A stretch of DNA of 53,422 nucleotides, counting the filler, from Stegostoma tigrinum (taxonomy: Eukaryota): assembly GCF_030684315.1 (NCBI RefSeq). It is 3 parts of 3 records of this genome, joined end to end, with 100 filler letters (N's around TTAATTAATTAA, not from the genome) between each part and the next. Parts side by side here need not be neighbours in the genome. Positions count along the whole stretch, not along the records: positions 24,424 to 53,422 come from NC_081396.1; 2 more parts are not named here. One strand, given 5' to 3'. Positions within the stretch are counted from its first letter, which is position 1. Every line of letters starts with the position of its first letter. Position numbers and translations under genes: made by a program. The notes under the pieces were generated by a model. It worked only from the letters and a program-made list of their open reading frames with translations, ran no database searches and had not been told where the DNA came from. Positions 24,424-37,744 of this stretch are shown here, one piece after another.

Positions 24424-24493
24424 CCTCCTGGCTCTCCTCAGACCATTTTTGAGCTCCTTCCTCGCCTGCCTGTAATCCGCTAGAGCTGAGCTG
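24424..24493 (-). mobile_element. 5'-truncation end of a young CR1 copy (same family as 31655-35591)
   Basis: The reverse complement ...gattacaggcaggcgaggaaggagctcaaaaatggtctgaggagagccagg nearly matches ~33696-33746. Confidence 0.85.
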
Positions 24494-29619: not shown

Positions 29620-31430
29620 AGAAACAAATTGTTCCAATTAATTCGTCTGTGTCGACCAGAAGTTCGAAATTAATCTGATCTCATTTGCCAGCATTTGGTC
29701 CACATCCCTGCAAATCCTTCTAATTCGCATCAGCTTCCTGGTGCTTTTTGTGTATTTTAATTGCAACAGCCACGATCACTTCCTCTGGAAGTTCGTTCCA
29801 TGCAATCAAAATCCTCCCTGCGAAATATTTGCCCCTTATGTCTCTTCCAAATACTTTGGCTGCCAAATTAAACCGATGCCCACTTCCTTTTCTCTCCCTG
29901 ACACCGGAAAAAATATACTTCGCATTTTCACCTTATCCATGGTCGTCACGATTTAATATGTTTCTACAAGGTCACAACTCAGCCTCCAACACTCCAGGGA
30001 AAATAGTGCCAGTCTGTTCGACATCTCACGATCGCTCTGACTCTCGAAACTTGGCAACAAACTTAGAAATACTCTCCAAAAAAAAAATCAATTCAATGAC
30101 ATCTTTCCTCAGGCATGGAGACAGAAATGAATGCATTTTCCAAAAGTGGCTGAAACAATCTCTGGTACAACTACACAACTGTGACATGACATCCCATTTC
30201 CCAGCCTCAGTGCACTGACCAGTAAAGGTAAGCACACTAAAAACCTTCCTCACTGTTCTGTCTTACAAGTTATTCCACTTTTGCCAAAGTACGAATCTGC
30301 ACTCCAGGTCTGTTTGTTCAGCAACACACCCTCGGATCTTTCGTAGATGAATTCCACCCAAGAATGACCTATCAAAACGCAGCACCGCACATATATCGAA
30401 ATTTGCTCAATCTGTCACTTGTTGGCCTTTTTGTCTCATTTGAACATGATTTGGTCTTTCTCTGGGGAAACGTTTTGGCTGTCCATTTCATGATGAATTT
30501 TGGTGTCTCCAGATACTTACTGAAATTATACCAGCTGTATTCACGTTAAAATCCTTTATGTAAATGACGAAAAAGTCAATAGATCCAGCACCAATCCCCG
30601 TGGCACACCACTGATTAGAAGCCTCCATTCTGAAAAGCAACACTCCATTACCATCCACACACTCCTATCTTCCAGCCACTTCCAGTTAGTTTACCCTCTG
30701 TTCCGTGAGCTCTAAATTAGTTAACTAATCTACCATGCAAAACCTTGTCAAAAGCCTTACTACCATGGTTTGGTTTGTTCAATACTCTTCCGCACATCTT
30801 CAAAACTTTCAATCAATTTAATGAGAAACGAACTCCCATTTACTAAGCTGCATTTACAATTCAAGTCAATTCCTGCATTTCGAAAACCATGTAAATCATT
30901 TCATTCAGAATGCCCTCCGAAACCTTGCACACTTCTGATTTCAATCTCACCGGCCTATGGAACTTTCACTTTTCCAGGCCATTTTTCTTAAATAGTGTCA
31001 TCACGGTAGCCAACCTCCAGTCTTCTGCCTCCTTGGCTGCAGTTATTGATGATGTAACTATCTCCACAAGGGGCCCAGCAATCACTTCGCCAGCTAACAA
31101 TAATTTCGAGGCCAAACCCGATGGACTCCAGGAGGCGAATCCAAATTAAAGTTTCTTAAGAAGTGCATCACCTCCTCTGTTGCATGGACATTGTTCAAGC
31201 TATGACTATTAATTTCCGAAAGATCCTGAGCTGATATAACCTTCTCCAATGTATGCACTGAAGCAAAATCCTCGTTTAGTGTTTGATCCATCACCTGCTG
31301 TGTCACGTGTAGATGGTCTTGCTGACCTTTATGGGGACGTCTTCTCTCTCTTGTTACTCTTTTGACTTTAGTACATTTGTAAAATAACATTGTCTTATCC
31401 GTAATTGCATTTGCCAAAGTTGTTTCATGT
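29620..31430 (-). mobile_element. Highly decayed CR1 LINE
   Basis: ORF 31094..31417(-) contains KVKRVTRERRRPHK...LNEDFASVHT...DSPPG (compare KRMVKERVGP...NEFFASVF...DKSPGPD). 3' UTR at ~29620-29720. Confidence 0.8.
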
Positions 31431-31678: not shown

Positions 31679-32613
31679 ATGGATGCTAGGGCAGTTGCTT
31701 GCTCCTCCTGCAGAATGTGGCAGTTGGGAGATGTGGCACACGTCTCCGCTGGCTACATCTGCGGGAAGTGCACCCAGCTACAGCTCCTTGAAAACCGTGT
31801 TAGGGAAATGGAGCTGGAGCTGGATGAACTACGGATCATTCGGGAGGCAGAGGGGGTAATTGAGAGGAGTTATCGGGAGTTGGTCACTCCTAAGGCTCAG
31901 GACGATTATAGATGGGTTACAGTTAGGGGGAGGAAAGGGGGCAGACAGACAGTGCAGAGATCCCCTGTGGGCATTCCCCTCAGCAATAAGTATAACGTAT
32001 TGGATACTGCTGGGGGGATGACCTACCAGAAGAAAGCCATAGTAGTCAGTTCTCTGGCACTGAGCCTGACACTGTGGCAAAGAAGGGAAGGGGGCAGAAT
32101 AGAAAAGTACTCGTGGTAGGGGACTCGATAGTTAGGGGAATCGACAGGAGATTTTGTGGGCAAGATCGGGATTCCTGGAAGGTATGTTGCCTCCCTGGCG
32201 CCAGGGTCCGGGACGTCTCCGATCGGGTGTATAAAGTTCTAAAAGGGGAGGGCGAACAGCCAGAAATCGTGTTACATATTGGCACAAATGATATAGCCAG
32301 AAATAGGTTTGAGGATATAAAAAGTGATTTCAGGGAGATAGGATGGAAGCTGCAGAGCAGGACGAACAGAGTAGTGTTCTCTGGCTTACTACCGGTGCCA
32401 CGAGATAGCGAGGTGAGGAACAGGGAGCGGGCGAGGCTGAACACGTGGCTACGCAGCTGGTGGAGGAGGGAGGGCTTCAGATATGTTGATAATTGGGATG
32501 CCTTCTGGGGAAGGTGGGACCTGTACAAGATGGACGGGTTGCATCTGAACTGGAAGGGGACCAATGTCCTGGGTGGAAGGTTTGCTCGAGTAGTTCGAGA
32601 GGGTTTAAACTAG
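31679..32613 (+). pseudogene. CR1 ORF1: zinc finger + leucine zipper + SGNH/GDSL esterase, one frameshift
   Basis: ATG at 31679. CSSC...CGKC, then a LENRVREMELELDEL zipper, then VVGDS...PGA...HIGTND...DGLH (SGNH blocks). One G is missing in the G6 run at 32012-32017; adding it restores an open DTAGGDDLPEESHSSQFSGTEPDTVAKK join. Stop TAG at 32611-32613. Confidence 0.9.
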
Positions 32614-35501
32614 TATGGCAGGGGGGTGGGAACCTGAGCTGTATACCAGAGGTGAGCGTTGATGCAGGTGAGGCAGTAGCAAGAGGTAGACCAGCTAGTG
32701 GGAAGGATTTTCCTGGGAAGGAACCAAGGGATCGGTTAAAGTGTGTTTGCTTTAATGCAAGGAGTATCAGGAATAAAAGTGATGAACTTAGAGCATGGAT
32801 CAGTACCTGGTGCCATGATGTTGTGGCCATAACAGAGACATGGGTTTCTCATGGGCAGGAATGGTTGCTGGATGTTCCAGGGTTTAGAACATTTAAAAAG
32901 AATAGGGAGGGGGGTAAAAGAGGAGGGGGTGTAGCGCTACTAATCAGAGAGGGTATCACAGCTACAGAAGCTTCCATTGTCGAGGAAGATCCGCCTACTG
33001 AGTCAGTATGGGTGGAAATTAGGAACAGCAAGGGAGTAGTCACCTCGTTAGGGGTTTACTACAGGCCCCCCAATAGCAGCAGGGAGATTGAAGAAAGCAT
33101 AGGTCGACAGATTTTGGAAAAGTGTGCACGCAGTAGGGTTGTTGTAATGGGTGACTTTAACTTTCCTAATATTGATTGGAACCTCCTTCGAGCAGAAGAT
33201 TTGAATGGAGCTGTTTTTGGAAGGTGTGTTCAGGAGGTTTTCCTAACGCAGTACGTTGACAGGCCGACGAGTGGAGAGGCCATTCTAGGCTTGGTGCTCG
33301 GAAACAAGCCGGGGCAGGTATCAGATCTTGTGGTGGGAGAGCATTTTGGTGATAGTGACCATAACTGCCTCACATTCTACATAGCTATGGAGAAGGAGAG
33401 GATTAGGCAGAATGGGAGGATATTTAATTGGGGAAGAGGAAACTATGATGCGATTAGACATGAGTTAGGAAGCATGGACTGGGAGCAGTTGTTCCATGGT
33501 AAGGGAACTATGGACATGTGGGGACTGTTTAAGGAACAGTTGTTGGGAGTGATGAGTAAATATGTCCCTCTGAGACAGGCAAGAAGGGATAAGATTAAGG
33601 AACCTTGGATGACGAGAGCGGTGGAGCTTCTAGTGAAAAGGAAGAAGGTAGCTTACATAAGGTGGAGGAAGCTTGGGTCAAGTTCAGCTAGAGAGGATTA
33701 CATGCAGGCAAGGAAGGAGCTCAAAAATGGTCTGAGGAGAGCCAGGAAGGGGCACGAGAAAGGCTTGGCAGAAGGAATCCGGGAAAACACAAAGGCATTT
33801 TACACTTACGTGAGGAATAAGAGAATGGTCAAAGAAAGAGTAGGGCCGATCAGGGATGGCATAGGGAACTTGTGTATGGAGCCTGAGGAGGTAGGGGAAG
33901 CCCCAAATGAGTTTTTTGCTTCTGTCTTTAAGAAAGAAACCAACTTTGTAGTGAATGAAACCTTTGAAGAGCAGGTGTGCATGCTGGAATGGATAGAGAT
34001 AGACGAAGCTGATGTGATGAAAATTTTGTCAAACATTAAGATTGACAAGTCGCCAGGCCCGGATCAGATTTGTCCTCGGCTGCTTTGGGAAGCGAGAAAT
34101 GCAATTGCTTCGCCACTTGCGAAGATCTTTGCATCCTCGCTCTCCACTGGAGTCGTACCTGAGGACTGGAGAGAGGCAAATGTAATTCCTCTCTTCAAGA
34201 AAGGAAATAGGGAAATCCCCGGCAATTATAGACCGGTGAGTCTCACGTCTGTCGTCTGCAAGGTGTTAGAAAGGATTCTGAGGGATAAGATTTATGACCA
34301 TCTGGAAGAGCATGGCTTGATCAAATACAGTCAACACGGCTTTGTGAGGGGTAGGTCATGCCTGACAAACCTTATCGAGTTTTTTGAGGATGTGACTAGA
34401 AACGTTGATGAAGGTCGAGCTGTGGATGTGGTGTATATGGACTTCAGTAAGGCATTTGATAAGGTTCCCCATGGTAGGCTCATTCAGAAGGTCAGGAGGA
34501 ATGGGATACAGGGGAACTTAGCTGCTTGGATACAGAATTGGCTGGCCAACAGAAGACAGCGAGTGGTAGTAGAAGGAAAATATTCTGCCTGGAAGTCAGT
34601 GGTGAGTGGAGTTCCACAGGGCTCTGTCCTTGGGCCTCTAGTGTTTGTAATTTTTATCAATGACTTGGACGAGGGAATTGAAGGATGGGTCAGCAAGTTT
34701 GCAGACGACACAAAGGTCGGAGGTGTCGTTGACAGTGTAGAGGGCTGTTGTAGGCTGCAGCGGGACATTGACAGGATGCAGAGATGGGCTGAGAGGTGGC
34801 AGATGGAGTTCAACCTGGATAAATGCGAGGTGATGCATTTTGGAAGGTCGAATTTGAAAGCTGAGTACAGGATTAAGGATAGGATTCTTGGCAGCATGGA
34901 GGAACAGAGGGATCTTGGTGTGCAGATACATAGATCCCTTAAAATGGCCACCCAAGTGGACAGGGTTGTTAAGAAAGCATATGGTGTTTTGGCTTTCATT
35001 AACAGGGGGATTTAGTTTAAGAGTCGTGAGATCTTGTTGCAGCTCTATAAAACTTTGGTTAGACCGCACTTGGAATACTGCGTCCAGTTCTGGGCGCCCT
35101 ATTATAGGAAAGATGTGGATGCTTTGGAGAGGGTTCACAGGAGGTTCACCAGGATGCTGCCTGGACTGGAGGGCTTATCTTATGAAGAGAGGTTGACTGA
35201 GCTCGGTCTCTTTTCATTGGAGAAAAGGAGGAGGAGAGGGGACCTAATTGAGGTATACAAGATAATGAGAGGCATAGATAGAGTTGATAGCCAGAGACTA
35301 TTTCCCAGGGCAGAAATGGCTAGCACGAGGGGTCATAGTTTTAAGCTGGTTGGTGGAAAGTATAGAGGGGATGTCAGAGGCAGGTTCTTTACGCAGAGAG
35401 TTGAGAGAGCATGGAATGCGTTGCCAGCAGCAGTTGTGGAAGCAAGGTCATTGGGATCATTTAAGAGACTGCTGGACATGTATATGGTCACAGAAATTTG
35501 A
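32604..35501 (+). pseudogene. CR1 ORF2: AP endonuclease + reverse transcriptase, one nonsense codon
   Basis: APE motifs NARS, ITETW, YRPP, GDFN, SDHN. RT motifs YRPVSLTS, QHGF, DFSKAFD, GVPQGSVLGP, FADD. TAG at 35013-35015 (likely GAG>TAG), after which the same frame continues to TGA at 35501. Confidence 0.95.
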
Positions 35502-35809
35502 GGGTGCTTACATGAGGATCAATGGTCGGCACAACATTGTGGGCTGAAGGGCCTGTTCTGTGCTGTACTGTTCTATGTTCTATGTTCTATGATTCATTTT
35601 TTGAATGAAGTTCCAGAAGAAGTTGTCGACATGAGCACATTTACTGCATTCAGAAATAGCACTTGGATTAACGGGAGTAATAATGGTTTGGAGGGATAAG
35701 GCTCAAATACAGGCACGGGTGACTGGTTCAGTTTGCGATTATGGTCGGCATCGATTCGTTTCTCTCCTTGCTGTATGACAATGGAATTCTGTCAGTGTCG
35801 GTTGGGGTT

Positions 35810-37068: not shown

Positions 37069-37744
37069 AATACAGCAGGTTGAAGATGCTGAAGTGGTCT
37101 GCATTCAAGTTTCCCTGAAAATGTTCGCACTTTCAGCACATGTACAATGTCGAAGCAGAGAAAATCTCCCTCGTCACTTTCATCCACAAGACTCCATTAG
37201 CTGTGCATTAAAGATTAATCATACACTGAATGTGCATTGCACGGTGCAATCAAACTTTTTCAGCCATGAGCACTACTGGTAACATACAATGAATATCCCA
37301 TTGAAAACAATAGCAGTAAATCCTCACAGCGATGATACAAGACAATGTTCATGCTGTTTCAAGATTCTTCCATCAGTTCCCATCAAGCACTTCTCGATCA
37401 CTGAATACTTAAAAATAAATTTTCAAGAAAACTTTACTCTCCGGGTTCAAGTGCCTCTAGAAAGAAACACATTCGTTGGACAAAAGGCGATGTTATTCAG
37501 ACGTTGGCCTCAAGTGATGGAGGAAAAGTTTTTCCGCTGGACGGANNNNNNNNNNNNNNNNNNNNNNNNNNNNNNNNNNNNNNNNNNNNNNNNNNNNNNN
37601 NNNNNNNNNNNNNNNNNNNNNNNNNNNNNNNNNNNNNNNNNNNNNNNNNNNNNNNNNNNNNNNNNNNNNNNNNNNNNNNNNNNNNNNNNNNNNNNNNNNN
37701 NNNNNNNNNNNNNNNNNNNNNNNNNNNNNNNNNNNNNNNGAATG

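Follow-up and report, generated by a model that had tools for sequence, protein, structure and literature searches.

A slippery heptamer shared by shark and avian-type CR1 retrotransposons points to programmed −1 frameshifting at the ORF1/ORF2 junction

How the second of the open reading frames (ORFs) in a long interspersed element (LINE) is translated from a bicistronic RNA is a long-standing question. In several reviews, the mechanism of ORF2 synthesis in retrotransposons without long terminal repeats (non-LTR elements) is called unclear outside SART1 and L1 (PMC3708506, PMC3894237, PMC5009743). The same question is posed by a CR1 LINE in a 53,422-nt stretch of DNA from Stegostoma tigrinum (the window; all coordinates are positions of this whole stretch), in which ORF1 and ORF2 overlap in different frames. 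A sequence-only reading of this locus had proposed that a −1 ribosomal frameshift at the end of ORF1 gives a gag-pol-like fusion of the two proteins. We compared the junction between CR1 elements of different hosts and found that a slippery heptamer is deeply conserved in CR1 of jawed vertebrates, at both the nucleotide and the protein level. The comparison strongly supports the core of the proposal, and the ORF1/ORF2 junction is probably a programmed −1 frameshift site that gives an ORF1-ORF2 fusion. Two further parts of the proposal, a stem 3′ of the heptamer and, for some lineages, the absence of an ORF2 AUG, did not hold. The features of the junction, here with their counterparts in an avian-type CR1 family that is described below, are as follows.

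32604-32610, plus strand: slippery heptamer T_TTA_AAC, the proposed −1 shift site, an exact X_XXY_YYZ in the phase of ORF1
32601-32607, plus strand: second in-phase heptamer, G_GGT_TTA, seen in the sequence and overlapping the first; the avian-type family has G_GCT_TTA instead
32611-32613, plus strand: ORF1 stop codon TAG, abutting the heptamer; all Leu-Asn-ending ORF1 homologues stop here
32614-32619, plus strand: six-base spacer TATGGC, which differs between subfamilies and holds a third-frame ATG (32615-32617)
32620-32631, plus strand: conserved G-rich tract AGGGGGGTGGGA (birds: AGGGGGAAGGGG), starting 10 nt past the heptamer; candidate stimulator
32648-32657, plus strand: motif AGAGGTGAGC, from alignment A6; the bird counterpart, AGAGATGAGC or AGAGGTGAGC, is shifted by one base, and the match may be chance

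The ORF1 frame (positions 1 mod 3) closes with GAG GGT TTA AAC TAG at 32599-32613. Direct reading of the sequence confirmed that T_TTA_AAC stands in phase at the end of ORF1 with the stop codon directly after it, and the overlapping G_GGT_TTA is present and in phase, both as had been claimed. ORF2 lies in the −1 frame (positions 0 mod 3), which is open from 32493 to 35015 and overlaps ORF1 by 120 nt; the list of ORFs agreed with the earlier statements on this frame and on its first codon at 32493, which is TTG and not ATG. The first in-frame ORF2 ATG past the heptamer is found at +543 (33147), inside the endonuclease and beyond its conserved N-terminal block LKCVCFNARS..ITETW, and the claim that no ORF2 ATG precedes it is thus correct for this shark copy. 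The ATG at 32615 opens a short third-frame ORF, as had been noted, which ends at a TGA after about 15 codons. In the whole window the string TTTAAACTAG is found a single time, whereas shuffles give an expectation of 0.06.

DNA of a distant lineage was obtained by scanning metagenome contigs with the elasmobranch ORF1 alignment, which yielded 80 loci (L001-L080). Nearly all of these come from one sample, with contigs named Ga0065711_... and up to 79 kb long, which evidently contains much host (avian-type) DNA; the bird loci are decayed copies from a single sample. At the protein level their ORF1 is 29-37% identical to that of the shark and 55-67% identical to that of the barn swallow, and we therefore refer to this family as avian-type CR1. 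Of the 55 copies with a match extending to the end of ORF1, 46 read ..GCT TTA AAC TAG, and the others carry single decayed bases. The bird stop codon is followed by six bases that differ by subfamily and then by AGGGGGAAGGGG, that of the shark by TATGGC and then by AGGGGGGTGGGA. The exact pattern TTTAAACTAG-N6-RGGGGG was present in 39 of the 80 avian-type loci.

When shark and bird sequences were aligned without gaps and anchored on the heptamer, identity was 0.98 over heptamer and stop codon and 0.68-0.75 over the G tract. Outside these elements it was 0.2-0.45, including the ORF1 coding sequence just 5′ of the heptamer. In addition, 50 bird copies were anchored via their protein match, independently of the state of the heptamer. 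Among these copies the majority letter reached a share of 0.974 in the heptamer, 0.98 in the stop codon and 0.945 in the G tract, compared to 0.887 in the last 12 codons of ORF1, 0.79 in the spacer and 0.76 in the following 24 nt. Heptamer, stop codon and G tract thus hold the columns that vary least. Scans of viral contigs with the ORF1 alignments A1, A3 and A4 gave no CR1 relatives, and neither did the genome contigs scanned with alignments A5 and A1. The junction pattern was met in 8 viral contigs, none of which encodes CR1 proteins, and these were discarded as chance matches.

A search with the shark ORF2-frame translation (tblastn) showed that the bird ORF2 also lies in the −1 frame. In at least 15 loci, the shark-bird homology in this frame begins one codon before Phe-Lys-Leu, at the heptamer. 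In most bird copies the −1 frame is closed by a TGA or TAG 3-6 nt 5′ of the heptamer, and any shift must therefore occur at the heptamer itself, which fills an ORF1/ORF2 overlap of about 16 nt; shift sites are classically located by an argument of this kind. The bird ORF2-frame peptide reads FKL-x-x-(K/Q/R)-G-(E/G)-G, followed by a linker that is variable in length and sequence and then by the start of the endonuclease, LKCxYTNARS.

These comparisons bear on the simplest alternative, namely that the heptamer is functionless and is common to the copies only by chance or by hitch-hiking with their descent. Copies within one genome do trivially have the heptamer by descent. Moreover, the string TTTAAACTAG alone reaches one match in 6 of 100 window shuffles. 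However, the heptamer is the best-conserved stretch between lineages with ORF1 proteins of about 32% identity and flanks of random-level identity, and the Leu-Asn-stop end described below recurs in at least seven vertebrate groups. Chance is hardly a credible explanation and can already be called very unlikely.

Within the shark family the junction appears to be unchanged. Contigs of four public runs, from four organisms, were placed on 32400-32850 at 80% likeness, and no common indel was listed for them in this interval. Among the variants listed (40 of 100, which makes copy-level variation only indicative) none falls in 32599-32640; a second variant-free gap lies further on. For many contigs of diverged subfamilies (83 and 99, respectively, in two of the runs) the match opens precisely at 32599, and it ends at 32631 or 32634. 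As the diverged flanks no longer align and the matches are bounded at these positions, GAGGGTTTAAACTAG, the spacer and the G tract form an island that is common to the subfamilies.

To follow the junction at the protein level, a profile of 20 ORF1s was compared to 1.84 billion representatives. This gave 7566 matches, of which the best 150 were examined together with earlier matches. Among the matches listed, 84 of 138 ORF1 tails end in Leu-Asn-stop, and 64 of these 84 have the two residues at an equal distance of 26 residues from the catalytic DGLHL motif. In the 65 unique tails of the same length, entropy was 0.62 bit at the Leu and 0.65 bit at the Asn, beside 0.27-0.81 bit in the catalytic motif and 1.6-3.0 bit in the ten residues preceding Leu-Asn. 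Of 67 unique tails, 65 have before the Leu a residue that an NNU codon can encode (P = 0.0014, given a 15% share of Glu, Lys, Gln, Met and Trp among the tails), which is the requirement set by the first U of the heptamer. The Leu-Asn tails belong to sharks, rays, sturgeon, eel, turtles, snake and birds; the elasmobranch hosts named are Stegostoma, Mustelus, Hemitrygon, Leucoraja, Mobula and Narcine, and the others are one snake, four turtles, a swallow, an eel and a sturgeon. The earlier statement that CR1 of birds and turtles shares this end is thereby borne out, by DNA for the avian-type family and by protein ends for turtles, snake and swallow. Conservation of the heptamer beyond the needs of the protein, which had been put forward as a check, was seen in TTA codon use, in the NNU-compatible residue, in nucleotide identity and in entropy.

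Some of the matched proteins stand out for their database context. Three shark-type CR1 ORF1 and ORF2 proteins (P0003, P0037 and P0205) are filed under Pseudomonas aeruginosa, Proteus mirabilis and Carnobacterium maltaromaticum, which suggests that these bacterial assemblies contain contaminating DNA from fish; in P0037 the copy reads through from ORF1 into the ORF2 frame (..GVFKLIWQGDGIR). P0041, P0042, P0085 and P0109 are host gene models with pieces of the CR1 ORF1 esterase at one end, for instance Mobula birostris isoforms named 'transmembrane protein 204' and long models with a ..RRALN or ..KTLN end. They are probably either artefacts of annotation or fragments of the element that were exonised.

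Could the Leu-Asn end be kept for the sake of the ORF1 protein? In an AlphaFold model (mean predicted local distance difference test score 82), the final helix stops at residue 175, leaving the E-G-L-N tail beyond it. With the tail outside the last helix, the model offers no apparent structural reason for the invariance, and no other reason on the side of the protein is apparent from it. This matters for a second alternative, in which leaky scanning or internal entry lets ORF2 initiate independently at an AUG further downstream, Leu-Asn is kept for the ORF1 protein and the heptamer is a by-product. Many database gene models indeed begin ORF2 at an AUG in the linker, and an AUG at +66 is present in about half of the copies of the main bird subfamilies. 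In the shark, however, the ORF2 frame offers no AUG before the one at +543, past the conserved N-terminal block of the endonuclease, and the positions of linker AUGs are not conserved. Moreover, a need of the protein for Leu-Asn would fix neither the TTA codon, nor the third base of the preceding codon, nor the adjacent stop, and the ten residues before the tail vary freely. We consider independent initiation quite improbable.

Under the frameshift reading, translation of the junction would proceed as follows. Ribosomes on ORF1 would come to hold UUA in the P site with AAC next to it in the A site. A minority of passes would then see both transfer RNAs (Leu and Asn) slip one base back onto UUU and AAA, after which the next codon would be CUA in place of UAG and reading would go on into the endonuclease and the reverse transcriptase. 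The product would be an ORF1p-ORF2p fusion with the junction ..E-G-L-N-L-V-W-Q-G-G-G-N.., and the trans-frame peptides to be expected are ..EGLNLVWQGGGN.. in the shark and ..RALNLGSKGEGD.. in birds. Ribosomes that do not slip, presumably most of them, would end at the adjacent UAG and release ORF1p alone. This would result in a high ratio of ORF1p to ORF2p, and ORF2p would be tied to the RNA and to the ORF1p multimer, like Gag-Pol. The adjacent stop may be a part of the signal, and the G-rich tract may raise the slip rate. Three components of a canonical −1 signal, namely an in-phase heptamer, an overlapping ORF in the −1 frame and conservation beyond protein need, are all present.

Several observations weigh against this reading. 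The support for it comes from sequence comparison. Junction DNA was read, as short aligned stretches, for two deep lineages (shark and avian-type), and the breadth beyond these is deduced from proteins. The first U of the heptamer is incompatible with one Leu-Asn-ending ORF1, P0048 (..EELN). The LINEs that have been studied, L1 and SART1, use other routes according to two reviews (PMC5009743, PMC3708506). Furthermore, three minor bird subfamilies (L005, L023 and L033) have an in-frame AUG at +12, in the arrangement UAGnnAUG, and the ORF2 gene model of the stingray Hypanus sabinus starts MGGGG, which implies the same arrangement. With regard to RNA structure, none of nine 55-nt folds (shark and eight bird subfamilies) stood out, with z between −1.3 and +1.1. 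RNAalifold gave −1.7 kcal/mol and one compensatory pair over 27 sequences, and a G-quadruplex was predicted in only 2 of 10 sequences.

The two last points deserve closer attention. A 90-nt fold of the shark junction was likewise no more stable than its shuffles (z = +0.30), and the hairpin proposed by RNAalifold, which pairs the G tract with a pyrimidine-rich stretch, is weak, starts 10 nt past the heptamer and is not common to the shark. In this search of pseudoknot-free folds, z-scores and RNAalifold thus gave no stable stem-loop 5-9 nt past the heptamer. The CAGG/CCTG stem of the sequence-only reading and its alternative stems turned out to be weak: they are no more stable than shuffles, are not kept between shark and bird and show almost no covariation. 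With no stable or covarying fold, the conserved feature appears to be the G-rich tract itself, located 10 nt downstream and apparently unstructured.

Other structural candidates were rejected. A GTATGGC/GCTGTATAC stem was neither stable beyond shuffles nor conserved between shark and bird, and the same applied to a hairpin closing the G tract and to the G-quadruplex. Compensatory changes that were seen by eye in birds (AGGUG/CACCU vs AUGUG/CAUAU) were too few, and their register too inconsistent, to be counted. About 40 nt past the heptamer, AGAGRUGAGC is common to shark and birds, shifted by one base and in a different ORF2 codon phase, which may be chance. In birds the motif of this type (columns 47-56 of A6) forms the 3′ arm of a hairpin GGCUCA-N7-UGAGCC.

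The AUGs close to the stop codon bear on a third explanation, termination-reinitiation, in which ribosomes finish ORF1 at the UAG and some of them restart nearby in the −1 frame, at an AUG or a non-AUG codon. The conserved letters of the junction and the G tract would then be a reinitiation signal and not a slip site. The in-frame AUG 2 nt past the stop in the three minor bird subfamilies, the stingray model and the lack of a stable 3′ stimulatory structure speak for it, as do the LINE precedents SART1 (UAAUG) and human L1 (PMC3708506, PMC3894237, PMC5009743). In lineages with UAGnnAUG, reinitiation is a fair rival, or both routes may coexist. The sequence-only reading had named an in-frame AUG between ORF1 stop and endonuclease as evidence against itself, and on this point the outcome differs by lineage. 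The earlier claim that ORF2 lacks an AUG accordingly stands for the shark family and the main bird subfamilies, and fails for the three minor ones and the stingray model, with their AUG two codons past the heptamer.

In the shark, in contrast, no start codon in the ORF2 frame overlaps or adjoins the ORF1 stop. The shark's sole AUG in the vicinity (32615) is out of frame, with no common indel to bring it back. The main bird subfamilies have no AUG before +66; about half of their copies have one at that position and the rest have Val or Leu, and the first conserved AUG of these subfamilies lies inside the endonuclease. Reinitiation also leaves unexplained the exact in-phase X_XXY_YYZ, the TTA codon for Leu and the preceding NNU codon. 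No calicivirus-type UGGGA was found in the 60 nt 5′ of the shark stop; a UGGGA is present 3′ of the stop, at 32627-32631, with no stable structure found nearby. Since the heptamer is retained throughout and the AUG of the shark is not in frame, reinitiation could not be the shared mechanism, and as the explanation of the junction we regard it as unlikely.

Frameshifting at the heptamer can also be framed more broadly, in a form that is possible but doubtful. In this form, CR1-group LINEs of jawed vertebrates would make ORF2p only as an uncleaved fusion, through U_UUA_AAC, the adjacent stop and a linear G-rich element at 10 nt, with no pseudoknot. This element might act through a bound protein, either ORF1p or a host G-tract binder, which would allow feedback control. 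Lineages with ORF1 ends of the ..QGN or ..SKN type would use G_GGA_AAC or A_AAA_AAC in the same place.

Such other tail classes do exist among the ORF1 proteins. Ten tails end in ..QGN and four in ..SKN or ..GKN, all with the spacing to the catalytic motif unchanged, and another group carries xKN plus about 12 more residues (proteins P0099-P0112, P0135, P0143, P0162, P0191 and P0192). There is also a ..FFH/FFR class. The ends ..QGN, ..SKN and ..GKN are what G_GGA_AAC or A_AAA_AAC plus a stop codon would encode, which we take as a lead only.

The element that carries the junction lies at about 31680-35591 on the plus strand and is a copy of a shark CR1 LINE that, at 3.9 kb, is full-length but dead. 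The assignment to CR1 is based on the order of its domains, the type of ORF1 and the 3′ tail. Its parts are the following.

31680-32613, plus strand: CR1 ORF1, with a Cys-rich N-terminus (CxxC...CxxC; zinc-finger-like), a coiled-coil-like stretch and a C-terminal SGNH/GDSL esterase; broken by a 1-nt indel
32012-32017, plus strand: run of six G, site of the inactivating 1-nt indel, where the ORF1 frame changes (from reading frames)
32604-35015, plus strand: ORF2 in the −1 frame, with FKLVWQGGGN after the heptamer, then an unconserved linker, AP endonuclease (about 32751-33308) and reverse transcriptase (about 34197-34925)
35034-35501, plus strand: C-terminal part of ORF2 in a different frame, after a second frame break
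35569-35591, plus strand: 3′ microsatellite (TGTTCTA) x3.3, a CR1-type tail in place of poly(A), 68 nt past the ORF2 stop

In ORF1, the stretch 32074-32610 matches the GDSL/SGNH lipase family of Pfam (PF13472, E 1e-12). The closest database protein is from Stegostoma tigrinum (zebra shark) itself, with 96% identity, as fits an orectolobiform-like shark as host, and the matches of the ORF1 profile include bird, turtle and snake proteins, as is expected for ORF1 of the CR1 type. On the 5′ side of the G run the ORF1 frame is 2 mod 3 (..NVLDTAGG), and on the 3′ side it is 1 mod 3 (GDDLPEES..KKGRGQNRKVLVVGDS). ORF2 contains the Pfam domains Exo_endo_phos (PF03372) and RVT_1 (PF00078), and its C-terminal part is in another frame because of the second frame break near 35015-35034. 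The copy is considered dead because of these two lesions, the indel in the G run of ORF1 and the frame change in ORF2. No Rfam match was found in the 31,679-35,501 piece.

Elsewhere in the window, older CR1/L2-like reverse transcriptase fragments that are 25-40% identical to ORF2 were found at 29744-31127 (minus strand), 24424-24492 (minus strand) and 52629-52931 (plus strand). A short edge fragment among these pieces is 83% identical to ORF2, and one of the older fragments lies directly 5′ of the full-length element, on the opposite strand. A run of N at about 37540-37740 is an assembly gap or a masked stretch.

In most non-mammalian vertebrates, the retrotransposons that dominate are those of the CR1 group (PMC13343379). 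Recent CR1 surveys make no mention of frameshifting or of an ORF overlap (PMC13343379, PMC8665684, PMC4316615, PMC4120745), and in the full-text literature and reviews searched we found no statement of CR1 frameshifting, although an earlier mention is possible. A review of recoding names only HeT-A, TART and L1 among the non-LTR elements (PMC5009743). If the frameshift reading is true, CR1 would be the first LINE with a well-founded case for frameshifting of the gag-pol kind, with a slip site kept from sharks to birds, and its reverse transcriptase would carry the esterase ORF1p at the N-terminus. The recognition of intact copies would be affected as well, since ORF2 would need no AUG and pipelines that demand one would misjudge activity. 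In addition, the adjacent stop and the G-rich element would make up a short natural cassette for studying the stimulation of frameshifting in vertebrate cells.

That −1 frameshifting takes place on this heptamer in retroviruses, LTR elements and coronaviruses is textbook knowledge. U_UUA_AAC is the heptamer of coronaviruses, and it also serves at the pro-pol junctions of deltaretroviruses, where a stop codon is close by. The CR1 junction resembles these signals in the heptamer and its phase, in a −1 ORF that encodes a polymerase and has no start of its own, and in the expected minor fusion product that would set the ratio of structural to enzymatic protein. In contrast, CR1 has no demonstrable hairpin or pseudoknot 5-9 nt on; it has a G-rich tract at +10, and the stop is always adjacent. 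CR1 is also a non-LTR LINE and encodes no protease, and the fusion would therefore stay uncleaved.

A minority of frameshift stimulators start 12-15 nt from the shift site and act together with trans-acting factors, as described in the recoding review (PMC5009743). By analogy only, the sites of arterivirus and cardiovirus type covered there are similar in that a conserved element lies at least 10 nt past the shift site and forms no convincing intramolecular structure (PMC5009743). Theirs is a C-rich motif that acts together with viral and host proteins, or a hairpin to which viral 2A binds (PMC5009743), whereas the CR1 element is G-rich. Among non-LTR elements, a gag frameshift has been reported for Drosophila HeT-A (PMC5009743). 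That shift differs in position, as it lies within gag of a telomeric element lacking a reverse transcriptase and not at an ORF1-ORF2 junction.

In SART1, ORF2 is translated by UAAUG translational coupling, which relies on a stop-start overlap together with a structure downstream (Kojima et al. 2005, according to PMC3708506 and PMC3894237). Like CR1, SART1 has a bicistronic LINE RNA with a short signal at the junction, and expression of its ORF2 requires ribosomes to get as far as the ORF1 end. The shark CR1, however, has a slip heptamer at its junction and no in-frame AUG there; only some CR1 lineages carry an AUG close to the stop. Human LINE-1 uses an unconventional, AUG-independent termination-reinitiation (Alisch et al. 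2006, cited by PMC5009743 and PMC3708506). Here the likeness is that ORF2 is made rarely, from the same RNA and with no dedicated promoter or splice. L1 has a spacer between its ORFs and no required sequence, whereas the frames of CR1 overlap and the sequence at their junction is deeply conserved.

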